Assembly (NCBI GenBank): GCA_037447605.1
Contig: CM074818.1
Span: forward strand, 124,001-188,000
Direction of reading: 5' to 3'
DNA: 64,000 nucleotides
Source of the DNA: Zygnema circumcarinatum SAG 698-1b
Lineage: Eukaryota; Plantae; Zygnematophyceae
The notes beneath the pieces are model-generated. The model saw nothing but the letters and a program-made list of their open reading frames with translations, did no database searches and was not told the origin of the DNA. The position numbers and the translations under genes were made by a program. Below, piece after piece: positions 33,722 through 62,907 of the stretch. The stretch's first letter is position 1. Each line of letters opens with the position of its first letter.

Positions 33722-33880
33722 AGGGGGTGTCAGACTTAACAAAATCTTACGAAAAGCGTTACGAAAAAAAAGGTTACGAAAGTACTCCGCCGCAGGAGGA
33801 TCGCTATTATACTGAAGTACTCGTTCTGATGTCAAACTTACGAACACGCGTACTGAAATTTTTTAAGTCTGACACCCCCT
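33722..33880. mobile_element. MITE copy 1 (159 bp), TIR AGGGGGTGTCAGACTTAA, TSD AGT
   Basis: Perfect 18-bp terminal inverted repeats; AGT at 33719-33721 and 33881-33883; internal TTACGAA repeats; homologous in reverse orientation to 47911-48045. Confidence 0.93.
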
Positions 33881-41893: not shown

Positions 41894-42197
41894 CGGTTAC
41901 GTATTGCTAACATCCACAATGCAACGACGGCGGAGTACACGTGGTATGTCAAACTTCAGAAACTCAAATCATTTTACAAGGGGAAGCTCATGCATGGATG
42001 TGAATGCCGCCGTTTGAGTTGTCACGGACATGTTCCTAATACGTTTGGAATCCGGCTGTGTCGCTTATCGCTGAAAGGGTTTTTGCTTATTTATGCTTCG
42101 CAGGTATCGAAATCAGAACAGCGATGGTGTTGTCGGAGACTCGTTCACGCTGACGAACAAGTTCATGATGTGCGGGAAGACGGCCAGCTTCTGTTAG
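41894..42197 (+). pseudogene. PAP: PAP copy A: last two exons only (rest in the gap); apparent 1-nt deletion
   Basis: IHNATTAEYTW/YRNQNSDGVVGDSFTLTNKFMMCGKTASFC* matches copies B and C. The segment from the Gly codon to the donor is 49 nt versus 50 nt in copy B. Pseudogene status is uncertain because this is next to a gap. Confidence 0.7.
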
Positions 42198-43836
42198 ATA
42201 GGGGTTTCAATGGGAGAAGAGGAGCCTTTTGAATGTAACATTGCACCTGAAGTTTGGGAAGTGAAGCAGGTCATAAAAACATCGAAGGGGGCTTTAGGGA
42301 CAGTATTTCGCTAGGTAAAACATTTGTTGGGAATTTTCTTAGGCTATTTAGTGAGAATAACATGGTAATGCACAAGAACTGTCTCTTTTGATACGGAATA
42401 TAATATGTGCATATACCCATTCATACATTGTGTACACGAATCTTTGAATGTTGACATTAAGACCCCCTCCCACCTGCACTCCCCCTCCCCCCCCTTCATG
42501 CTTCCGTCAAGTTCGGACCTTGGCGACTGTCCCCCGTTTTCCGAAGCACCCAGCGGCCGGCGCGCAGGGCCGGCTCTGCGGCGGCGGCTCCGAAACTGGA
42601 GGCTCCGTGCGGTGCGTTGGAGATGTAAACTCACCGCTTGGAGGCGCGGTTCCATGGATAGTGTCGCCGTTGTGTGCCACGCTGTTCTGGGTTTTGTCAA
42701 GGCGCATTTTGCCGACGTGGCAACCGACGTGGCGCCGACATTTTGCCAAAACTCGCCGTGGAGAGATTTCCGCGAACCGCGATGGCGATGACCAGTCGCG
42801 CGTTACCACGTGGAAGTCGAGGATCGGTCTTGATGGCACGTGGCACTGTGACACTGTGGCACTGTGGCACTGTACTGTGGCACTGTACTGTGGCACTGTG
42901 GCACTGTTGCCACGCTGGCGTGCAGCCATCGGCCCGCGGGTCCGCCGCGTGCGCTCGTAGCAACTTGCGTGGCGAGTGCTGATTGGAAAAACTGCATTGG
43001 GATGGAGCCTCGACTTGACACCTGGCATACCGCGAAGGCCGCCATTAGAAAACGAAACGGATTGAATCGAAACGGATTTTTTTTTGTTTTTTTTTTTGTT
43101 TTTGGAAGCTGTTCAGAATCCGTACTGTGCAATGTCGCCCTCAACACCGACAAGTTATCGGACGATTTTTCCCTTGTCTTTTCCGCCACGTGTCGGCTGC
43201 GCGCCGGGAGCAGCCGGGATTGGTCCAACTCCGCCACCGACCTCGCTTCCATCGCACGCTCTATCCTCCGTGTGATTTCTTACATCCTACGGCGGAGTCT
43301 ATCTGAGGAATAGTCACGATTCCGTACGTCCTACGGAATCCAATGCTCGCGGTATCACATTGAGAGATGCCTTCCAATTGTCGGTGTCCAATCACCACAA
43401 TCCACGTAGCAGGCGTTGACCGTAGCATCCTAAATCGCATATTCGTTCTTGTCCTATTTAACCAGCCGACGACCACTTAAGTTCCGCCACGTACACATCC
43501 ACGTGGCTGTTTTCATTCGATGTTAAGCTTTTGCGGTGCCCGCACCAGTCCACACCTTACAACTCGACAAAAGCTTACTGTACTGTAGTTCTAGTTTCCG
43601 TACAACGACCCTTCGCGCTGCCGCTCCAAAGCAATCACACCCAGCCACGTATCCTAATCACCCTCGTCCCTGCCTGCCACGTCACCCAGCACGTGTGAAC
43701 CCCCCGGTCCCGCCCTCGCCGCGTATATATTTAGCGGAGCCGGCCCCAATCGCCCTCTCGTCCGTGCTCTGTGTCAGAATTTCCAAAGCGTCGCCTTCAG
43801 CACTGAAGGCGAGGCCGAGGAAGAGGAGGAGGAGCT

Positions 43837-47910: not shown

Positions 47911-48045
47911 AGGGGGTGTCAGACTTCAAAATTGTTCGTAAGTTTGAGACCAGAACGAGTACTTCGGTGACATCGTAATCCTGGTGCGGCGGAGTACTTA
48001 CAAAACTTTTTTGTTCGTAAGATTTCGTTAAGTCTGACACCCCCT
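47911..48045. mobile_element. MITE copy 2 (135 bp), same family as 33722-33880, TSD ATT
   Basis: TIR AGGGGGTGTCAGACTT at both ends; ATT at 47908-47910 and 48046-48048; internal homology to copy 1 (AGTACTCCGCCGCA, GAAGTACTCGTTCTG, CAAACTTACGAACA on the minus strand). Confidence 0.93.
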
Positions 48046-49759
48046 ATTGACGCTTTGAACTTTTTTTCTACCGGAAGTCCTGCATTGAATGGTGCACAAA
48101 GAACAGGTCGATAGGTCCTCTACAAACCTAAGTACTACAACTCAATCCCATAGAGATTGGATTTTTTTTTCGAAATTTCATACCAGCTAAAATGAAAAAT
48201 ATAAATTTCGATATATGTCTAAAACTATCTGTGCCTCAATATGGTACACAGGATTCACCTCCTCCGCCTGAGCCACAGGCGCAGATATGGCTTACTCTGA
48301 AGTTAGCCGTAGTGCCTTGTTTAAGAGACTGGACATGGTCCTTCCAATGAAAGAGAATGTTGTGCACAACATAGTCTCAATAACATGAAGGAAACATGAG
48401 AGAGAATGATGTGGCATTGATCTCACGATGGCGATGATGCCATCAAATTGATATGGTCATAATCATCATGGGGAACCACAAAGATGTGGTCTAAAAGGAC
48501 TCCAGGAGAAAGGCTATGCGCGCAAATCTACTGCTAGGCTCCATCCCTATAAACATGAGAAACATGAGAGAGCATGACGAGAGGACGCGGAGCACTATGT
48601 TGAGATTTGTGGACATAGAAATCTGTCGGACTCAACTCTCTGACTACAGAACAAGGATCCTGCAGCGCCCAGCAGGAAGAAGGCCACGTGGCATCCACGT
48701 GGTGCCTCCTGACACATCGACGGACGAAACGCGAACATGTGGAATGCGAATGGCATGTTGCCACGTGTTGATGTTTTAGCGGTATACCCCATTTTCCTAT
48801 TCAGGTACGGATGAGATGAATCGTATGTGCGTGATGTTCACATACGCAACGCTGGAGAATCGTTCAGACAGTTGGAGGTTTGACTACTTGTTCATTAGGG
48901 CGTGTCAGACTTAAAAAATTCTCGTAATACTGAAAACTCGATATTCGTAACATTTCGAGTCAACGTCAGTAAAACTAAAATTCCCGAGCCTAGTTTTTCG
49001 CACTCGCGGCGCGGTCCTGTTCGCACTCCGCGATCGCCGTCTTCGCACTTCTCCAAACGCCGTCTTCGCAACTTCGCCCTCGCGCGGGGCCCTCAGACTT
49101 AGAAACAGCGCCGGCGCGGCGCGCGGAGACCGCTTGTCGTTGTGTCGTGTTGCGCGTCACGTCGCTGCGCGCCGCCACCATCTCCTCCCCCTCCGCCGCC
49201 GCCGCCGCCTCCTCCTCCTCCTCCTCCTCCTCCTCCTCCTGCTGCTGCCGCCCCGACTTAAGCCGAGGGTCTTGTTCACGCTTGCCCGCCGTCCCTTGTC
49301 AGCGCCCAACTTGATCGGGCGAACAACTTCTTGTGGCCGCTCCCCAGTCCCCACACGCTCCCTTTGCTCCAGGTACTCCCGCCTGCCCCCCTGCTCCCTG
49401 TCCCTGTATGCCTGCCTACTTGCCCGCTTGCCGGCCTGCACCCTTGCCTAGCTACCCCCCCTTGCCCGCTGCCCCCCCTCCCTGCCCCCTTGCCCCACTC
49501 CCTACCCCTTACCTTGCCCCCTTTGCCGGCCTGCCCCCTTTCCTATGTACCCCCCTTTGCCCGCTGCCCCCTTCCGTGCCCCCTTGCCCCACTCCCTGCC
49601 CCCTTTTCCCACCGCCTGCCCCTTTCCTTGCTTTTCCCCGCCCCCTTGCCGGCCTGCCCCCTTGTCTGCCTACCATCTTACTACCTTTTTTGTTTCCTTT
49701 TCTTTTTTTTTATCCTTTCCTGCAGCATTCAAAGCTGCATTCAAACCATTGCCATCATT

Positions 49760-49990
49760 ATGCCTCGACAGTCAGATAGAAATTGCATACTTGCAGTTTT
49801 AGAGGGCTTAATTGCATTTGCTTATTTTTATGAGGATGAAGAAGAAGCAGATTCTTCTGACGACGAAACAGAAGCAGAAGAATTGATGGATTTGTATCAG
49901 CAAGTAATATCTTCACGCTATTTTTATGAGCGTTTTTTTTATTTAAATGGGTCCAAATGGAGTGAAAAAAGGGGTGCATATGGGGCATAA
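49760..49990 (+). pseudogene. Probable 5' fragment of a Harbinger-type (DDE_Tnp_4) transposase
   Basis: MPRQSDRNCILAVLEGL...EDEEEADSSDDETEAEELMDLYQQVISSRYFYER resembles, from memory, the MPRxSxR-acidic tract-SxRY N-terminus of fungal/algal Harbinger nucleases. It lies inside the TIR element. No DDE core was seen. Confidence 0.5.
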
Positions 49991-51073
49991 ATGGGCTTTA
50001 AGGGGGTTGCTATCTGAATATAGCAAGGTGGCTAAATTTTTCCTTTAAATTTGGAATTTTTTCTTAACGTCGTTTTTTATTTCTGCAGGTTCTTGGATCG
50101 AGCGTGAAAATGGAAGTGGAGATTCCATCGGACTAAAAGTGTTCAAAATTTCAGGGCAGAAAAATAGTAAAAAAAAACGGTGGCGAAATATTGTTGAACG
50201 GGTGAAATAGTTTGGTTTTTTTTAAATTCTTGTTTTGTTGACTAGAGAAGGTCGGAATTAGGAGAACAAGTATGGGTACGAAGTTTAAGGGCTTAGGGTT
50301 TAGGGAGAGGGAGAGAGGAAGAAAGGGAGGGAGAGACAGAGTGAGAGGAAGATAGGGAGTGGGACAAGGGGTTAAGAAGGAAGTTGAAAGGGAGGGGTAG
50401 GGGGGAGCGAGAGAGAGAGGGGGGGGAGAGAGAGAGAGAGAGAGAACGTGAACTGTGTATACATAGTTAAGAGAGGCCGAGTGGCTAAAAGTGATAATAT
50501 TTAGTTTGAACTCAGATAAAAATAAAAATTCAACAGATTGACATCCGGCACTGGCCGTACTTTGTTGGAGCATGTCATCGGAATTCACATCTCGGCATAA
50601 AAGTAAACATTTGGAATAACGAGTGGTGGAATACTGCACACGTCGCATAAGTGGGTGACATCGAACCTCACCAACAAGCCAACCCACCGTCCATCACCTT
50701 AGAATTGGGGGGGGGAGGGAGGGAGAGGGTGGGGGGAAAGGGAGGGAGTTGGGGAACGGAGACGGAGAGGGTGGGGGGAGGGAGAGGGTGGGGGACGAGG
50801 GAGAGGGTGGGGGAAAAGGGAGGGGGTGGGAGAGGGAGGGAGAGGGTGGGGGGGAAGGGAGGGGGAGGGGAAGGAGGGAGTGGGTGAGGGGGAAGGGAGA
50901 GGGTGGGGGGAGGGAGGGAAAGCAGGGGGGGGCGGAGGGGAGGGGGGGGGGGGGGAGGAGGAAGCGGGGGGGGAGGGAGGAGGTGGGGGGGAGGGAGGGA
51001 GAGAGATGGGCAGGTGAAAGAAAAAGGAATAAAAGAACAACAAAAAGACTACAGTTTCCAAGACAATTTTTTT

Positions 51074-54023
51074 TCAAGTAACCACCTCGACCTCCGCCTT
51101 CTCATGCTCAAAACTAGGCTCTGAAACATCCCCTCCCTCATGGAACGGCTGTTCCGTATGGTCTAACTGACGTAGAGCCTCATAGATCCCCACACTCGTA
51201 GCCACGGCCAGATTCAATGAACGGACGTGCGTTTCTATGATCGGAATTCGGGCGATTCCGCCCGCATGGAAACCGTTGGAGCACTGCTCCAAAGCTTCTT
51301 TGGGGAGACCAGTGGTTTCAGAACCGAAAAGGAGCCAATCGCCAGGGCGGTAGCGGAGAGTCTGCGTGGGAGAGAGTAGGGAGAGGAGGGAGAGGAGGGA
51401 GAGGAGGGAGAGGAGGGAGAGGAGAGAGAGGAGGTAGAGGAGAGAGAGTAGGGAAAGGAGGTAGAGGAGGGAGAGGAGGTACAGAAGGGAGAGGTTATTA
51501 GAGGAAGAGGGCGGGAGTGGGAGTGGGAGTGGGAGTGGGGAAAGGGGAGGGAGGTGGGGGAGGAAGGGAGAGAACGAATATGGAGTCAGGGGATTGAGGG
51601 AGGGAGAGGGGAGGGAGAGGGGAGGGAGAGAGAGAGCGGGAGCGGGGGGGAGGGAGGAAGGGGGTGAAAGGGAGGGAGTGGAAAAGGAGAAACGGAGGGT
51701 GGGGGGAATGGGAGGGAGGGGGAGTGGGAGAGGGCGAGGGAGAGAGGGAGTGGGAGGGGGGAAGGGGAGGGGGAGTGGGAGTGGGGGGCGGAGGAGGGGG
51801 GAGTGGAAGGGGGACGCGGGGAGACGAGAATGAATTTTAGGGGGAGGGGAGTGAGAGGAGGGGCGAGAGAGTGCGAGAGGGGGATGGGAGAGGAAGGGGG
51901 GTGGGGAAAGCGAAAGAGTGGGAAAGGAGAAACGGAGGGTGAGGGGGAGGGGGAGAAGGGGAATGGGACGAGTGGGAGGGAGTGGGAGTGGGGGGGGGGG
52001 AATGGGAGGGGGGGAGGCGAAGGGGAAAATGATTGATGGGGAGGGGAGGGGAGGGAGAGGGAAAGTCAGGGAGGGGGAAGAGAGCAGCGGACGAGAGGGA
52101 GAGGGAGAGGAGAAAGGGAAGGTGAGCGAGAGGGGAGGGGGTGGTAGAGGAATAGGAGGGGAAGGAGGGAGAGGGAGACGCACCCAATGAACTTGACTGC
52201 CTCTCTTTGAAAATGCAATGAGTCGTTTTGGCTCCTCCTGCAATCGTGGAGAGAAGGGAAAGCGAACATTGTACAATCAGTGATGTGAGGAATCGCAGGT
52301 GAGGGAGGGAGGGAGGGAGGTAGGAGAGGCAGAGAGGGGAGGGAGGGAGGGAGGGAGGGAGAGAGGAGGGAGGGAGAGGGAGGGAGGGAGTGGGGAGCGA
52401 GGGAAAGGGTGGGGTGGAAGGGAGAGAGATGCGGTGGGGGGGGGAGCGAGGGGATGGGGGTTGTGAGGAGGGAGGGAGGGAGGAGAGAGGGGGAGGGAGG
52501 GAGGGAGAGGGGAGGGGAGGGAGTGGGAGAGGGGGGGGAGGGCGAGGAGAGAGAGAAAGGGGGGGGGGGAGGGAGAGGAGAGAGAGAGGGGGGGGAGGGA
52601 GAGGAGGGAGAGAGGAGAGGCAGAGAGGGGAGGGGAAAAAGCAAAATCAGGACGGAAATACAGACATTTTGAAGATAAAAGGGCAGGGATAGGAGTGATG
52701 CAGACATCAACAGAGAAGTGACGGAGAGAGTGAGCGGGAGAGAGTGGGAGAGAGAGTGGGAGATAGTGCTCTTCGAATGGAACTGCCTGGGAATTGAACC
52801 CAGATTTCTTGCCAGAGGCAAGTGCCCTCCCAGTTGGACGAGCAGCACTTTTTTACTCCCTCTCCTCCTAATTTGACAAAAGTTTTTATTGCCATTATAA
52901 TTTTCTTTTCGCACAGGTCCATGAATGAATTACCTAACCCTCCCTTTCCATCTCCCTCATTTTCCTCTCTCCCAATTCCCTCCTTCACTCTCCCCCTCCC
53001 TTTCCCTCTCGCCCACACTTCATTTCTCCCTCTCTCGTCCTCTTCCTCACTCCCTCGCACCTCTCCTCTCACCCTCCATCAGTCACTCTCTCTTGCCTCC
53101 CTCCCCCTCTCCCTCCCTTTCCCACTCCCTCATACTTTCCTTCTCTCTTCCTCCATCCCTTCCTCTCCCCTCTCCCTCACTCCTCCCTCTTCTCTCTCCC
53201 TGTGTCCCTCCCTCTCTCCCCTTGACTGTCCTACACCCTCTTTCTGTCTCACCTCTTTTCTCCCACTACCCTTCTCCCTCTCTCCTCTCTCGTCCCTCCT
53301 CTTTCCGGCCTCTTCCATCCTCTCTCTCTCTCTCTGTCTCTCTCCCTCTCACTCACCTCCACAAGGTGCAGCCCCACCGATGTCGCCGCACATGTCCGCG
53401 CAATCGACCCAACGTTGCCGGGAATCTGCAATTAACTCAGAACATTATTAAAAAAACCACAAAAAATGAAGTATTTCAGAAGTTAAGAGATAAATTTCAA
53501 GTGTACGACTCAACTCCCAGATGCAAAATAACCTTGAACCCAAAGAAAACGATCGCTAAAGATAACGCAGAAATAGTAGGGTCAATCAGACAAATCTGAG
53601 CAATTCTATACAATTTTTCAGCAATTTTTATGAAGGTATTAAAGAACTTAATGAGATTTCAAGAGAAAGCAAAAATAATAATATATATATACATAATATA
53701 TACATACCAAGGGAGACACAAGAACCACGTGAAGGTCAGCGCGTTGTTCGTTCTCTGAAGCTCCACTTCGGCTTATAGCAGCAGCTACAGACCAAGGCAA
53801 GGAAAGGCAAGGAAAGGCAAGGAAAGGCAAGGAAAGGCAAGGAAAGGCAAGGAAAGGCAAGGAAAGGCAAGGAAAGGCAAGGCAAGGAAAGGAAAGGCAA
53901 GGAACGAGGGAGTACCTCTAGCAAAGTTAGCGCGTGAAGCGCAGCCACACGTCGGTTTCGAGTCCCTCCGGAAGGGAGGGAAGGGCGCAGGCAGGTGGCG
54001 TCAGGCACAGAACCTCGGGCCAT
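51074..54023 (-). CDS. trmL: tRNA (cytidine/uridine(34)-2'-O)-methyltransferase, SpoU/TrmL family; probably a defective captured copy
   Basis: Exons LHVVLVSPL/IPGNVGSIARTCAATSVGLHLVE, EEPKRLIAFSKRGSQVHW and TLRYRPGDWLLFGSETTGLP...RIPIIETHVRSLNLAVATSVGIYEALRQL. The PLGF..RAGLDYW exon was not found. Confidence 0.85.
52779..52848 (-). ncRNA. tRNA-like cloverleaf (pseudo-tRNA or SINE head) in a TrmL intron
   Basis: Acceptor GTGCTGC/GCAGTTC (one mismatch, one G-U); D-arm GTCC-AACTGGGA-GGGC; anticodon stem CTTGC/GCAAG with a 5-nt loop CTCTG; T-arm CTGGG-TTCAATT-CCCAG; perfect B box GGTTCAATTCC. Confidence 0.6.
53794..53903. repeat. (GGCAAGGAAA)n decamer array filling TrmL intron 1
   Basis: Visible directly. 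Confidence 0.9.
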
Positions 54024-54705
54024 GGCGGGCGGCCGGATAAGGAGGGGGAGGGGAGGTTGTTGGGGGGTGGCTCGACGACAAGAGTGGGACCCGGCGCGCG
54101 GGCGGGCGGGAAAACAACCATGACGTCACGTTGACGCGATTTTCGCCATTCTTTTCTTCGCACGTCCATTTCGGCGCCTCTTTTGGGTGCGAACAAAATC
54201 GTGCGAAGAAGTGCCCTTTTTAGTAAACCCCACGGGTCAATCTTCGTAACGTTGACCCGTTGACTTAGCACAGTTGACTTCCGTTCGGTTCGGTTTAGGT
54301 TCGGGGGCGCGATGATTTTTAGTACTTAGTAACCTCGATTCTCGTAATACTAAAAACTCGATATTCGTAACATTTTGTTAAGTCTGACACGCCCTATTAT
54401 GGAGGGTTTCCGAACCATCTTTTCCCCTTTCTGAACGACAACAACGGCCGACCTAGCATGCAAGGGCCTGCAATGTATCGTTGCCACGTGGCAGTCCCCG
54501 ACATTGTCGAAGGCTGACAAAGTCGGTCGGAGTCGGACAAAGTCTGATGATGACGGGGACGCTTGCAGCCAATAAGGTTCGCCGCTGAGCTGTCGTTTTA
54601 GTACAGAATCTCGTCGCATTAATGACTGTGACATTTTGTCCTACGCGCCAAACACAAACACCTTGGAAGGACACATGTCACAATTATTTGGTTCTATCTC
54701 CTAGC

Positions 54706-55437: not shown

Positions 55438-58409
55438 ATGGCGAAGATGGCGGTCCTCGCGGCGCTCCTTCTCGCCTTCGTGGCTGTGGCTGTCGCTGAC
55501 GTCACCCTTCCCAATAGCCCCCTCGGTGGGTGACCCGACATGGGCCCATGCACGTGCATGCATGCATGTTCCTGCATGAGTCATGGGTGGGCTATGGGGC
55601 ACGTCATACTGTGGGGACTAGCCGAGTTGGGCATGTCGTGGGGGTCTGCAAGTTTGGTTCATGCGGAGCAGCTGGGGGCGTTCGTGTATGAGGAGGGGAA
55701 ATGGAAACTGTGGAGGGGGAAAGTCGGGCGGGGACGTGTAGACAGGATATGTCTACCTCTCAGACTTAGAAGTGGCAAGGGCCGAGGGAGGGCAGAAGTG
55801 AGTGTGTATCGAGGTGGGCAACTTTGACGGGCCGATACTTCACTCGGTATTTCAGTCCTAAGTATTTCAAGACTTAAATGTTTCTTTTTCTGTTTTACTT
55901 ACAGGTACCGTGTACGACCTTCAGCCTGACGCGTACTTGACCAAGCCTGCGTTTACTCCCAACTTCACCAGCGCCGATGCTCCCTTGACCTTCCTTCAGC
56001 AGACTGGCACTAACTACCCGGAGCAGGTGAATCTTTAAGATGGCTGCCTATTATACTTCCCGCAACGAGTCTCTCGTTTGTTGGACTTTTTTGTGTTTCT
56101 TTGTTGTAACTGTATTGTTAAATGTCTTGTTTTTCTCTCAGGTGGCTCTGTTCCCTGCCGTCCGCAATGGCTCCTTCCTGTGGGTGCGCTTCGTCACCCC
56201 CGCCTACTCTGCGGGCTCGGTGTACTATGGCCCCAACATGAAATCTTTGAAGAATATCTCCACGTAAGCTGTCTATGCTCCTTCGGTGTAAAGAGCCGTG
56301 GGAGGAGAGTAGTAGAGAGGGAGCGGGGAATAGAGGTAGAGTGGTGGGAGAGGCAGGTCGGGAGAGAGGAATTGATGTAGAGAGTGGCAGAGAGGGAGAG
56401 AGGGAAAAACTGTCTGTTTCACATCTTAAATTGTTTTTATAATCTGCTTAATTGGCATTGTAGCTTAGCTTCATGTTTTCATGGCTGGAATTGTTTCTGA
56501 TCTCTTGCAGATGCTCCGGAAAGAGGTACACCTACGCCAAGGGCTACGTCGGCGAGTACACCTCCGGCTGGATATTCTTCTGCCTCCTCGGACCCCTCCC
56601 CCCCTCCACGCAGTACTACTACCGCGTGAAGGGTCTCTCCACCGTCTTCCCTTTCATGACCCTCCCCGAGGTGGGAGGCTACCCCATCAAGTTCGGCTTC
56701 ACTGGTGAGAGGGGCGAAATGGGATCAACACAGTACCTTCTGGAATATTCTGTCCTGTTTCTACTTTTTATTCAGCATTGAAGTCGCTCATCAGTGATGT
56801 TTTACTGCGCAGCTGATGTTGGCTTGACCGGTAACTCGAGCATCACCCTCGATAACCTGAAGGCGTCTGACTGCGACTTCATTCTTTTCGCTGGAGATGT
56901 CAACTATGGTGAGATTCTCTACCGCTAATGTTTTGTCGTACCATTGGATGACGTTTTCATTATTTGATTGGGGACCAAGTGTACGATGTCTTCTCTCACT
57001 GTTTAGCTTCTCTGATTTTCCACAAATTTTGATATTTTTCTCACTGTTTGCAGCTGACAACTACGGATCATCCTCCTGCACTCCCTATGACGGTGTGACT
57101 GATAACGGCTTCAGCACGTGCGGTGTTGCTGGCCACCGTTGGGACTTGTGGGGCCGTCTCTCCCAGAAGGCTTTGGCTTACACTGTATGGGTCGAGAAAG
57201 CACTCCCTTTCATATGTTTTTTCTTCGTAAATCAAATATTGTGATGTTATTCACTGTCTGTATCGGATTTCCTTCATCGTCCTCATCTGGTCCTTCTGTG
57301 ACCCTTCATTATTTGATCTAAATGGCAGCCGACTGCCTTCATCGCCGGAAACCACGAGAACGAGTTCCATAACGACTGGATGGAAGTTGAGCCCTTCAAG
57401 GCGTATTTGGCCCGCACGCCCGGCCTCCTTGACGACAATCCGTACAACAAGAACATGGTACAGGAACAACATTTCTCGCATGCTCCACATTTTTTTATAC
57501 TGTTTGGGCATTGTGTCTTTCTGTATTGCCTTGGCGCGGTTAGCCCTGGTGACTGTGCTTATGTCACCTTGAAATCCTTGGACCGTGCAGTACCTCGATA
57601 CCGTGAACTACGGCAAGAGGACATGGGTCTCCAAATCCCCTCTCTTCTACTCCATGGACATCGGCCCCGCCCACATCATCGGTCTGGCGAGCTACTCCGG
57701 CTTCGTCAAGTACACCCACCAGGTTCGTAGAAAAACATTGTCCGTGTTTTTTAAATTTAAGTGTATGGAAAGTGTGTTGAAATATCGAAACTACCGATAA
57801 TTTCATTTTATATTTACAACATTTAGTGTTTTATCCTCTGCAGGACTACTGGCTGAAACAGGACGTGTGCTCCATCAACCGCACCCGCACCCCATGGCTG
57901 CTCGTCTTCCTCCACTCGCCGTGGTACAACAGCGACAAGAGCCATTACCTCGAGGTAACGGCCGATCAACCTCTGTTTTACCACTTTCGCCGCTTCAATC
58001 CAAGGGACCGTCGATCTACAGTAGTTTTGCGATCTTGTCCGTCAATTTATACTTGTAAATAGCCTTAGTCTTTTCTAAGGCATTCCGGCTGATCGTCGGA
58101 CTTGAACTACTGTACTGTTTCTCTATCCGGCGTCGCAGGGCGAGCCAATGCGGTGGATGTTCGAGTCCTACCTCTACAACTCCAGCGCCGACCTAGTCGT
58201 AGCCGGCCACGTGCACGCCTACGAGCGCAGCAACAAGGTCTACAACCTGCGCCTGGACAACTGCGGCCCGACCTACGTCACCGTCGGTGACGCTGGCAAC
58301 GACGAGGGCGTTGCTGGACCGTACGATTGCAGCCCCTCTCAGCCTTTTTGTCTCTCTGAGCCATGTTGGACATTGATGCAGGGGGATGTGTTTTGTGTGT
58401 TCCGCCTCC

Positions 58410-58478
<69 letters not shown>

Positions 58479-58875
58479 CTCTCTCGCTCTCAAGTTTTTT
58501 TCACGTCTTGCTTGCAGGTTCCTTGTCCCCCAGCCCGAGTACAGCGCTTACCGCGAACTGTCTTTCGGCCACGCTACTTTGACCATCAACGACGCCACCA
58601 CTGCCACCTACACATGGTACATGACATAACCACTCACCCCCCTAAACCTAATTTCTTGCCGCTAAGTCACATGGGTTTGCAGGCTATTATGCTCTTCGTT
58701 TCTTGCATGTGCTTTGTACTGCTGTGCCCATTTTACATGTAACTCCTTGTACTGAATGAGAGGTTTTTGTTCCTGTGACAGGTACCGCAACCAGAATTCC
58801 GACGACATTGTCGGTGATTCCTTCACCCTGACGAGCAACTGGTTGACCTGCCGCAAGAGTGCCAACTTCTGTTAG
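55438..58875 (+). CDS. PAP: Purple acid phosphatase copy C, signal peptide, same exon structure as copy B
   Basis: MAKMAVLAALLLAFVAVAVA; DVG, GDVNY, GNHE, VFLH and GHVH intact; ends TCRKSANFC*. Confidence 0.95.
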
Positions 58876-59154
58876 ATGGTCGAGAGAGACTGTATGGAGA
58901 GAGAGTGAATTGGAACCTAGAGTGACTTTTTTGAAATAGAATGTCGAGAATAAGAACGGCTTTCAGCTGGTACCTCAGTCGGGGTATACTTTCTAGTGTC
59001 CAGATATCTTGTCATTCGTACTGGAACACTAAAATTTTGGATTTATATTATTTCGCCATGTGAAATTGATCATGTTGATCTGGTTTCAACCGCTGGACAT
59101 GCGCGTAATGTTCTGTTTGGATAACCACTGTCTCACTATCGACCGGTTGTCCTA

Positions 59155-62040
59155 AAACCCTCCCTTTCCTTCCTCGTCTTTGCTCCCTCTCTGTGCTCTT
59201 CCTCCCAACCCCTCCCTTTCTCTCTTCCTCTTCTTTTTGTTTCTATCTCTGTGTTTTCGTCCTAACCCTCCTTTCCTTCCTCTTTCTTGTTTCTATCTCT
59301 GTGCTCTTCGTCCCAGCCCCTCCTTTTCCTTCTTCTTTGCTCTATCTCTGTGTTTTCGTCCTAACCCTCCCTTTCCTTCCTCTTTCTTTTGTTTCTATCT
59401 TCTGTGCTCTTTCTGTCCCAACCCCTCCCTTTCCTTCCTCTCTTCTTTTGCTATATTCTGTGCTCTTCGTCCCAACTCCTCCCTTTTCCTTCCTCTTTCT
59501 TTTGTTTCTATTCTGTGTTTCGTCCCAACCCCTCCTTTCCTTCCTCTTCTTTTTGCTCTTATCTCTGTGCTCTTCTGTCCCAACCTCCCTCCCTTTTCCT
59601 TCCTCTTTCTTTTGTTTCTATCTCTGTGCTTCTTCTGTCCCAACTCCCTCCTTTCCTTCCTCTTCTTTTTGTTTCTATCTCTTGTGCTCTTCGTCCCAAC
59701 TCCCTCCCTTTCCTTCCTCTCTTCTTTTTGCTCTCTATCTCTGTGCTCTTTCTGTCCCAACCCCTCCCTTTCCTTCCTCTCTTCTTTTGCTATATCTCTG
59801 TGCTCTCTGTCCCAACCCCTCCCTTTCCTTCCTCTTCTTTGCTCTATCTCCTGTGCTCTTCGTCCTAACCCTCCCTTTTCCTTCTTCCTCTTCTTTGCTC
59901 TATCTCCTGTGCTCTTCGTCCTAACCCTCCCTTTTCCTTCTTCCTCTTCTTTTTGTTTCTATCTTCTGTGTTTCTGTCCCAACTCCTCCCTTTCCTTCCT
60001 TCTTTCTTTTGTTTCTATCTCTGTGCTTCTTCGTCCCAACCTCCCTCCCTTTCCTTCCTTCTTTCTTTGTTTCTATCTCTGTGCTCTTCGTCCCAACCCC
60101 TCCCTTTCCTTCCTCTCCCTTGCTCTATCTCTGTGCTCTCCGCCCCCTCCCCCCCCTCTCCTCTATCTCTGTGCTCTTGGTCCCAACCCCTCCCTTTCCT
60201 TCCTCTTCTTTGCTCTATCTCTGTGCTCTTCGTCCCAACCCCTCCCTTTCCTTCCTCTTCTTTGCTCTATCTCTGTGCTCTTCGTCCCAACCCCTCCCTT
60301 TCCTTCCTCTTCTTTGCTCTATCTCTGTGCTCTTCGTCCCAACCCCTCCCTTTCCTTCCTCTTCTTTGCTCTATCTCTGTGCTCTTCGTCCCAACCCCTC
60401 CCTTTCCTTCCTCTTCTTTGCCATATCTCTCTGTGCTCTTCGTCCCAACCCCTCCCTTTCCTTCCCCCTCCCTCGTCCCAACCCCTCCCTTTCCTTCCTC
60501 TTCTTTGCTCTACCTCTGTGCTCTTCGTCCCAACCCCTCCCTTTCCTTCCTCTTCTTTGCTCTATCTCTGTGCTCTTCGTCCCAACCCCTCCCTTCCCTT
60601 CCTCTTCTTTGCCATATCTCTGTGCTCTTCCCCTCCCTTCCCTTCCTCTTCTTTGCTCTATCTCTGTGCTCTTCGTCCCAACCCCTCCCTTTCCTTCCTC
60701 TTCTTTGCCATATCTCTGTGCTCTTCGTCCCAACCCCTCCCTTTCCTTCCTCTTCTTTGCTCTATCTCTGTGCTCTTCGTCCCAACCCCTCCCTTTCCTT
60801 CCTCTTCTTTGCTCTATCTCTGTGCTCTTCGTCCCAACCCCTCCCTTTCCTTCCTCTTCTTTGCTCTATCTCTGTGCTCTTCGTCCCAACCCCTCCCTTT
60901 CCTTCCTCTTCTTTGCTCTATCTCTGTGCTCTTCGTCCCAACCCCTCCCTTTCCTTCCTCTTCTTTGCTCTATCTCTGTGCTCTTCGTCCCAACCCCTCC
61001 CTTTCCTTCCTCTTCTTTGCTCTATCTCTGTGCTCTTCGTCCCAACCCCTCCCTTTCCTTCCTCTTCTTTGCTCTATCTCTGTGCTCTTCGTCCCAACCC
61101 CTCCCTTTCCTTCCTCTTCTTTGCTCTATCTCTGTGCTCTTCGTCCCAACCCCTCCCTTTCCTTCCTCTTCTTTGCTCTATCTCTGTGCTCTTCGTCCCA
61201 ACCCCTCCCTTTCCCTTCCTCTTCTTTGCCATATCTCTGTGCTCTTCGTCCCAACCCCTCCCTTCCCTTCCTCTTCTTTGCTCTATCTCTGTGCTCTTCG
61301 TCCCAACCCCTCCTTTCCTTCCTCTTCTTTGCTCTATCTCTGTGCTCTTCGTCCCAACCCCTCCCTTTCCTTCCTCTTCTTTGCTCTATCTCTGTGCTCT
61401 TCGTCCCAACCCCTCCCTTTCCTTTCTCTCTGCTCTATCTCTGTGCTCTTCGTCCCAACCCCTCCCTTTCCTTCCTCTTCTTTGCTCTATCTCTGTGCTC
61501 TTCGTCCCAACCCCTCCCTTTCCTTCCTCTTCTTTGCTCTATCTCTGTGCTCTTCGTCCCAACCCCTCCCTTTCCTTCCTCTTCTTTGCTCTATCTCTGT
61601 GCTCTTCGTCCCAACCCCTCCCTTTCCTTCCTCTTCTTTGCTCTATCTCTGTGCTCTTCGTCCCAACCCCTCCCTTTCCTTCCTCTTCTTTGCTCTATCT
61701 CTGTGCTCTTCGTCCCAACCCCTCCCTTTCCTTCCTCTTCTTTGCTCTATCTCTGTGCTCTTCGTCCCAACCCCTCCCTTTCCTTCCTCTTCTTTGCTCT
61801 ATCTCTGTGCTCTTCGTCCCAACCCCTCCCTTTCCTTCCTCTTCTTTCTTCTTTGCTCTATCTCTGTGCTCTTCGTCCCAACCCCCCCTTCCCCTTTCCT
61901 TTCTCTTCTTTGCTTTGCTCTTATCTCTGTGCTCTTCGTCCCAACCCCTCCCTTTCCTTCCTCTTCTTTGCTCTTATCTCTGTGCTCTTCGTCCCAACCC
62001 CTCCCTTTCCTTCCTCTTCATTGCTCTCTATCTGTACTCT
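59155..62040. repeat. 52-bp tandem satellite, about 55 copies, strongly pyrimidine-biased
   Basis: Unit TCTATCTCTGTGCTCTTCGTCCCAACCCCTCCCTTTCCTTCCTCTTCTTTGC; period confirmed (CCCAACCCC at 60781 and 60833). Confidence 0.97.
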
Positions 62041-62907
62041 TTATCTGTCCCTCGCCTTTTTCGGCGCTTCCTCCTCTCTCGTCCTTACCCCGAGCTCTGG
62101 ACCATTTCAATCTTGGATATTTCTCGAATTCAAAACCTGCATTGGCGGATACAAAAAATACTTTCTTTTTATTCCAAATTGTCTGAATTTGTAATATGAA
62201 GAGAAATTATAAATTTATTTCCTTCCCGAACATATCGGGCATTTATTCACAGTAAGCACATCCAGTACACTGCAATACGTCACAACTCCAACTCCTGTCA
62301 ATTGCCCCAGTTCTACCGTAAATATCATCTATACCGTATATGACAGAAAATATATAACATATATTATGTTGTATGAAAGCCGTTGTCACGGATTCAATTT
62401 TCATCTCTTACTTTCTTTTCCCCTTAGAGCCCGCTTGCAGTTCCAGCGACGTTTGTGTGCAAGACTCCGCCCTCTCCTCGAGCATCATCTCACGGGTGGA
62501 GCCACTTATGCACAGGGTGTACACGTGTCAACTGTTTATTGGCTGCCCCCCCCCATCGCAAGACTTACGTGAATCACCTCCAACCACAATTCGTCACGTG
62601 TACTTTTTGTCCGACGTGACGTGCTGTGATTGGATGTTGTTAACCTGTTATTCTTACAGGTCGCCACGTCGGATGGCCCTGATCCCAGCTCTTGCAAACA
62701 CACCAGTCTCCTAGGGGGGGTGGGGTCCGATTGTCTACAAGATCTCTCCTCCCGAAAGATCCAAGGGGGGGGGAGTGATTAGCCAACATGAAAGTACAAA
62801 TTTTCGCGAAAGGGGGCGCGGATATCCAAAAAATGGGGCGGCTGTATCATTTTCCTTTTTTTCAAGCTGTAATCATTTGATCCACGGTCGGCAGGCCTGC
62901 GGCAGCC

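Follow-up and report, generated by a model that had tools for sequence, protein, structure and literature searches.

Gene capture by transposons with terminal inverted repeats (TIRs) is well documented in flowering plants, and the Pack elements known from them (e.g. Pack-MULE and Pack-CACTA) usually carry gene fragments made up of a few exon pieces. Canonical PIF/Harbinger transposons, which give part of its name to the PIF/Harbinger-ISL2EU-Spy (PHIS) superfamily, duplicate the target TWA (TTA/TAA) upon insertion. Catalogues of Pack-PIF elements exist for maize and rice, and the fusion of neighbouring insertions in the same orientation has been proposed as a route to Pack-type elements (PMC8903248). 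Another group of PHIS, Pangu, is characterized by a 5'-ANT-3' duplication and by TIRs 11-40 bp long, usually with AG or GG at their start; it was reported from 15 genomes, two of them algal, and its autonomous elements contain a second open reading frame (ORF) without known motifs or function (PMC4482050). Here we analyzed a 64,000-nt stretch of contig CM074818.1 of the streptophyte alga Zygnema circumcarinatum SAG 698-1b (hereafter the window), in which an element of ~5.5 kb at positions 48897-54395 encloses a copy of the TrmL gene. TrmL (also YibK) is a tRNA C34/U34 2'-O-methyltransferase of the SpoU/SPOUT class.

The locus holds a structurally complete, TIR-bounded, non-autonomous element with an incomplete, intron-retaining TrmL copy inside, that is, a Pack-type (gene-carrying, non-autonomous) transposon for which both the host lineage and the transposon group are new. 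Like the Pack-MULE, Pack-CACTA, and Pack-PIF elements, it is non-autonomous and combines TIRs and a target duplication with a host genic interior that includes introns; it also shares with them the presence of short, cargo-free family members and of neighbouring insertions in the same orientation. It differs from them in its streptophyte algal host, in ends of the Pangu rather than the PIF/Tourist type, and in a cargo that extends from the start region of the gene to its stop codon (four exons, three introns). In a limited literature search we found no case of gene capture in an alga or by a Pangu-type element. An earlier note on this DNA had proposed gene capture at the DNA level as a novelty; the capture itself agrees with intron positions equal to those of a moss gene (see below), whereas the novelty has to be narrowed, since Pack-PIF elements are already known in maize and rice (PMC8903248).

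Termini and family of the element

The ends of the element, together with two related miniature inverted-repeat transposable elements (MITEs) in the window, are located as follows.

48894-48896, left target-site duplication, ATT, the same as at 54396-54398
48897-48914, plus strand, left TIR, AGGGCGTGTCAGACTTAA, 18 bp, perfect reverse complement of the right TIR
54378-54395, minus strand, right TIR, inverse complement of the left TIR at 18/18 positions
54396-54398, right target-site duplication, ATT
33722-33880, minus strand, MITE of 159 bp in the orientation opposite to that of the element, flanks AGT/AGT
47911-48045, plus strand, MITE of 135 bp in the same orientation as the element, flanks ATT/ATT, 850 bp upstream of the element

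With up to three mismatches allowed, the TIR sequence was matched six times in the window, compared with 0.06 matches expected by chance. Two of these matches are the ends of the element and the remaining four of the six are the ends of the two MITEs, which are short non-coding relatives; no additional TIR was found between the two ends of the element at the same threshold. At TIR position 5, both ends of the element have C, in contrast to the G of all four MITE TIRs of the window. The MITE ends are asymmetric, one consisting of the TIR followed by AAAA(A/T)T and the other of the TIR followed by C(A/G)AAAT, and both types occur in the 5.5-kb element, one at each end, with the polarity of a complete element. 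The perfect 18-bp repeats, the ATT on both sides, and the end types shared with the local MITEs had all been pointed out in the earlier note, and all three were borne out here, the last of them by two MITEs with one end type on each side. As for the MITE at 47911-48045, its location near 48897 in the same orientation fits the orientation-conserving local insertion described for maize Pack-type families (PMC8903248).

The duplications follow the pattern A-N-T in 3/3 family members of the window (ATT, AGT, ATT), and the TIR of the element, which starts with AGGGCGTG..., has an AG start and a length of 18 bp, inside the 11-40 bp range of Pangu. Given these ANT duplications and the AG-starting TIR, the signatures match the Pangu group of PHIS rather than canonical Harbinger. 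The likeness to Pangu thus lies in the duplication and the TIR; the difference is that neither a DDE transposase nor a second ORF is present in the element or the window, and that gene-carrying members are not mentioned in the description of the group (PMC4482050). With canonical PIF/Harbinger elements and Tourist MITEs, the element has in common a 3-bp duplication, short TIRs with a G-rich start, an associated MITE family, and short subterminal repeats, but the duplications here are ANT (ATT, AGT, ATT) and not TWA. The earlier assignment to a PIF/Harbinger-related element therefore fits at the level of PHIS but not for canonical Harbinger, since ANT duplications match Pangu and not TWA. No transposase domain was detected in the scanned internal ORFs of the element, so the superfamily placement is drawn from the duplication and the TIR signatures. 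An alternative parse of the ends, with a TA duplication and a TIR starting from GGG, was rejected because it needs three extra base coincidences per element, or nine over the three elements.

Next to the TIRs, the element contains repeats of several kinds.

48918-48955, plus strand, 38-bp subterminal core, copy 1, with two TCGTAA motifs inside
54338-54375, plus strand, 38-bp subterminal core, copy 2, adjoining the right TIR
48956-49075, plus strand, left subterminal region with GTCAAC and four TTCGCA(C) motifs (23-bp tandem repeat)
54120-54337, right subterminal region with four GTCAAC, three TTCGCA, one TCGTAA, and a TGACGTCA palindrome

The two cores are identical at 37/38 positions and form a direct, not an inverted, repeat, with one copy beside each TIR. 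The MITE at 47911-48045 has an analogous shorter direct motif, TTGTTCGTAAG, beside both of its TIRs. TCGTAA occurs at 48922, 48945, 54244, 54342, and 54365; TTCGCA is present in four copies within 48997-49070 and three within 54157-54207; GTCAAC is found once at 48959 and four times within 54130-54273. From the window-wide density, fewer than 0.1 occurrences would be expected per cluster. The clustered hexamers resemble ordinary subterminal binding repeats, and judged by them the transposon-derived termini take up ~200 bp at the left end and ~280 bp at the right end. A TCAGACTTA in the interior, at 49092, is no more than chance would yield.

At the inner edge of the right subterminal region (54122-54129), ~100 bp upstream of the TrmL ATG, lies the perfect TGACGTCA palindrome, which we take to be a bZIP/CRE-type site and which could serve as a transposon-borne promoter element.

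The TrmL cargo

A tblastn search with streptophyte TrmL proteins revealed four TrmL exons on the minus strand between the TIRs, in agreement with the earlier claim of an intron-containing TrmL gene. The features of the cargo are given below in the order in which the gene is read.

54021-54023, minus strand, candidate TrmL start codon, 354 bp from the right TIR
53794-53904, microsatellite with a 10-bp unit, AAGGCAAGGA x 11, 96% matches, inside TrmL exon 1
53708-53794, minus strand, conserved end of TrmL exon 1, WSVAAAISRSGASENEQRADLHVVLVSPL, 59% identical to residues 100-128 of protein P0139, followed by a GTATGT donor
53357-53425, minus strand, second TrmL exon, IPGNVGSIARTCAATSVGLHLVE, 82-87% identical to streptophyte TrmL, with a cag acceptor and a GTGAGT donor
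52779-52848, minus strand, tRNA-like sequence (Arg, anticodon TCT) detected by ARAGORN, with an Rfam tRNA score of 36.2 bits against a gathering score of 29
52184-52237, minus strand, third retained TrmL exon, EEPKRLIAFSKRGSQVHW, 74% identical to P0139 residues 191-209, with a cag acceptor and a GTGCGT donor
51074-51361 (coding 51361-51077), minus strand, last TrmL exon with the stop codon, TLRYRPGDWLLFGSETTGLP...VVT (TLRYRPGDW...VVT), 65-71% identical to streptophyte TrmL, with a cag acceptor

The exon junctions carry canonical AG and GT signals throughout. The last exon matches the Pfam profile SpoU_methylase with E=5e-9, though only at profile positions 93-142 of 142. Its nearest proteins, at 64-71% identity, come from a lycophyte, mosses, Chlorokybus, and one EukProt transcriptome, with cyanobacterial TrmL next. 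The best identity was 71% in two word-indexed protein searches with this exon and in an exhaustive HMMER search against 1.84 billion cluster representatives, and the best metagenome match reached 65%; protein look-ups with two ORFs of the element returned no exact match. Judging from its sequence, the cargo is the host lineage's own plastid-type TrmL and not a foreign gene. One protein, P0230 (871 aa, with a C-terminal TrmL domain), was considered as a possible transposase-TrmL fusion and dropped, as it has only a weak TPR match in addition to the SpoU domain.

In the TrmL gene of the moss Sphagnum jensenii, introns are located after VLVSPQ, after LHLVE, before EGEKRL, and before DVKYRPGDW. 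The four introns flanking the cargo exons occupy the same protein positions, and these positions, common to the cargo and the moss gene, indicate that the template of the TrmL copy was genomic DNA rather than mRNA.

The gene is nevertheless incomplete. A block of ~40 codons (EPLGF..LKRAGLDYW..VH.SW..YF), which is the most conserved part of the family and is encoded by two exons in the moss gene, was not found anywhere in the element by tblastn or by an exon-specific hidden Markov model (HMM) in six frames, whose best score of 4.8 bits fell at an unrelated place. The possibility that the missing sequence is merely hidden, inverted, or diverged was rejected on the basis of the six-frame tblastn and the exon-specific HMM. 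A streptophyte TrmL orthologue aligns to solved TrmL chains with E=1e-34. Compared with solved TrmL/YibK structures (e.g. PDB 3e5y, 4jak, and 1mxi), the cargo exons can be aligned with the N-terminal motif (IPGNxG..R.C) and with all of the C-terminal half, but the ~40 residues between those parts (EPLGF..LKRAGLDYW..) are lacking. In the alignment of the orthologue, they correspond approximately to residues 29-66 of chain 3e5y and account for a large share of the SPOUT fold's N-terminal half, and the SpoU_methylase domain of the cargo is incomplete. With ~40 core residues missing, the cargo protein is unlikely to fold as an active methyltransferase. Skipping the block preserves the frame, as both junctions are of phase 0, and a shortened TrmL-derived protein is conceivable.

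The 5' exon is disturbed as well. Across the microsatellite, the candidate ATG at 54023 and the conserved part of exon 1 stand in different reading frames, and the two can be joined only via assumed splices. Since the unit of the microsatellite is 10 bp and not a multiple of three, a change in copy number would shift the TrmL frame. The position of the ATG, 354 bp from the right TIR, is close to the ~370 bp given earlier for the start of the gene; the upstream region or promoter said to have come along with it did not hold up. The subterminal motifs begin already at ~54130, only ~100 bp above the ATG, which leaves room for little native promoter. Nor could the description as nearly a whole gene be kept, given the absent block and the ATG out of frame. 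With an essential block missing and the 5' exon disturbed, the TrmL cargo looks pseudogene-like rather than like a near-intact gene with its promoter.

The tRNA-like sequence is on the TrmL sense strand, within the intron where the missing exon block belongs. It has a good B-box, one mismatch in the acceptor stem, and no T-run directly downstream, and no second copy was found in the window. It is more likely to be a pseudogene or the head of a short interspersed element (SINE) than an active tRNA gene. The same intron, read on the TrmL sense strand, changes from purine-rich (AG) sequence at the 5' end (52930-53350) to pyrimidine-rich (CT) sequence at the 3' end (52297-52634), a switch that suggests rearrangement.

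Explanations for the composite structure

In the explanation we favor, the locus would contain a non-autonomous cut-and-paste element of the Pangu type whose interior is mostly captured host DNA. A genomic TrmL gene would have been captured together with its introns; the copy would have lost the exon block of ~40 residues, with a tRNA-like sequence now in the corresponding intron, and the whole element would have inserted between two purple acid phosphatase (PAP) genes, PAP B and PAP C, with duplication of ATT. For its mobilisation, the element would depend on a transposase from elsewhere that recognises the 18-bp TIRs and the TCGTAA/TTCGCA/GTCAAC subterminal motifs. The cargo may have been acquired by the fusion of two neighbouring short elements, a route that agrees with the direct 38-bp cores and the nearby MITE in the same orientation, or just as well by template switching during gap repair. 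The element may also be one of several copies. Overall, insertion as a unit into the PAP B-PAP C spacer appears to us the probable history of this locus.

Several observations weigh against this explanation. With A-N-T fixed, only the middle base of the duplication is free, and an ATT/ATT match would arise by chance about once in four cases; because the family duplicates A-N-T, the matching flanks lend only about four-fold support to a single insertion. The four retained exons have neither stops nor frameshifts, and their splice sites are good, which is compatible with a young or still-expressed TrmL copy too. Finally, no transposase, second ORF, or autonomous partner was seen in the window.

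The alternative that survives best is that the locus is the birthplace of such an element, in which two short elements in the same orientation flank a resident TrmL gene, have lost their inner TIRs, and have never moved as a unit. A direct 38-bp core beside each TIR is what would be expected from separate elements of ~80 bp, but the TTCGCA and GTCAAC clusters reach 200-280 bp inward, which makes the ancestral element larger than a MITE of 80 bp. Another MITE in the same orientation lies just 850 bp away, and Pack-type elements have been proposed to arise when neighbouring insertions fuse (PMC8903248); against this, ATT is present at both outer flanks, and a resident gene would have lost an essential exon block. 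Fused MITEs should leave degenerate inner TIRs, and a gapped alignment was suggestive of them; the candidates were rejected as not significant, because among random 45-nt segments of the window, 31% and 93% reached a score at least as good. We regard this alternative as unlikely.

Still less probable is a coincidence, with an ordinary resident TrmL gene, ends that are remnants of unrelated insertions, and an ATT match by chance. The local abundance of the family (three elements in 21 kb) and the fixed A-N-T target, which makes equal flanks fairly likely, speak for it. However, each remnant must then have lost its inner half and no more, the two ends match as perfect inverse complements that share a private variant and are of complementary types, and the TrmL gene between them is incomplete.

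That selection keeps the exon-deleted TrmL-derived ORF and the intronic tRNA-like sequence, for example as a tRNA-related module of a multi-copy Pangu-type family (tRNA binding, decoy, regulatory protein, or accessory ORF), is the most doubtful proposal of all: all four retained exons are open with canonical splice sites, the frame is kept on skipping the lost block through two phase 0 junctions, and autonomous Pangu elements do have a second ORF of unknown function (PMC4482050), but the loss takes away much of the SPOUT fold's N-terminal half, and the microsatellite puts the start codon out of frame.

If the favored explanation is true and the family has moved a TrmL copy, introns included, that reaches from the start region to the stop codon, this would show the Pack mechanism at work in algal sisters of land plants, and the element would offer a dated, traceable case of cargo acquisition and decay. 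For annotation, it would call for caution, as TrmL-like gene models in the Zygnema genome may be transposon cargo and not a functional gene.

Left interior, phosphatase array, and low-complexity tracts

The left part of the interior contains a second gene-like sequence.

49100-49903, plus strand, orphan gene-like 5' fragment with an ATG-less first exon to ~49372, an intron at 49373-49724, and an ORF from 49761

The intron is CT-rich and bounded by GT..AG, and the ORF begins with MPRQSDRN. It had no Pfam match and no homologue in a search of 5.8 billion proteins (proteins of 120-383 aa), and the label of a transposase-like fragment given to it in the earlier note was dropped for this reason. 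The fragment could be the start of an accessory ORF of the family, as the second ORFs of Pangu lack known motifs (PMC4482050), or another captured fragment.

The genes on both sides of the element are tandem PAP paralogues, with 92.6% identity over 202 bp, several weaker blocks, and weak Pfam PAP matches, so that the phosphatase array described earlier as the setting of the element is confirmed.

start ~43837, last exons to ~47720, PAP B
start ~55438, listed in the array as 55438-58880, PAP C

The spacer between PAP B and PAP C is 7.8 kb long compared with ~1.6 kb for the A-B spacer, and ~2.1 kb of it is left after subtraction of the element and the MITE. The window holds no paralogous empty site: in the A-B spacer of the array, nothing matches the sequences flanking the element. 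The PAP paralogues have similar signal-peptide exons, and the array also takes in ~42100-42200. An assembly gap (run of N) at ~41.8 kb falls in or beside the upstream PAP copy.

Long, strongly strand-biased polypurine/polypyrimidine tracts of the GGGAGGGAG type were observed at 49377-49724, 50700-51005, 51372-52180, 52297-52634, 52930-53350, and 59180-62194. They occupy introns and spacers, and one tract of ~3 kb follows PAP C. Most of them are pyrimidine-rich on the coding strand, the exception being the tract at 52930-53350 within the TrmL copy.

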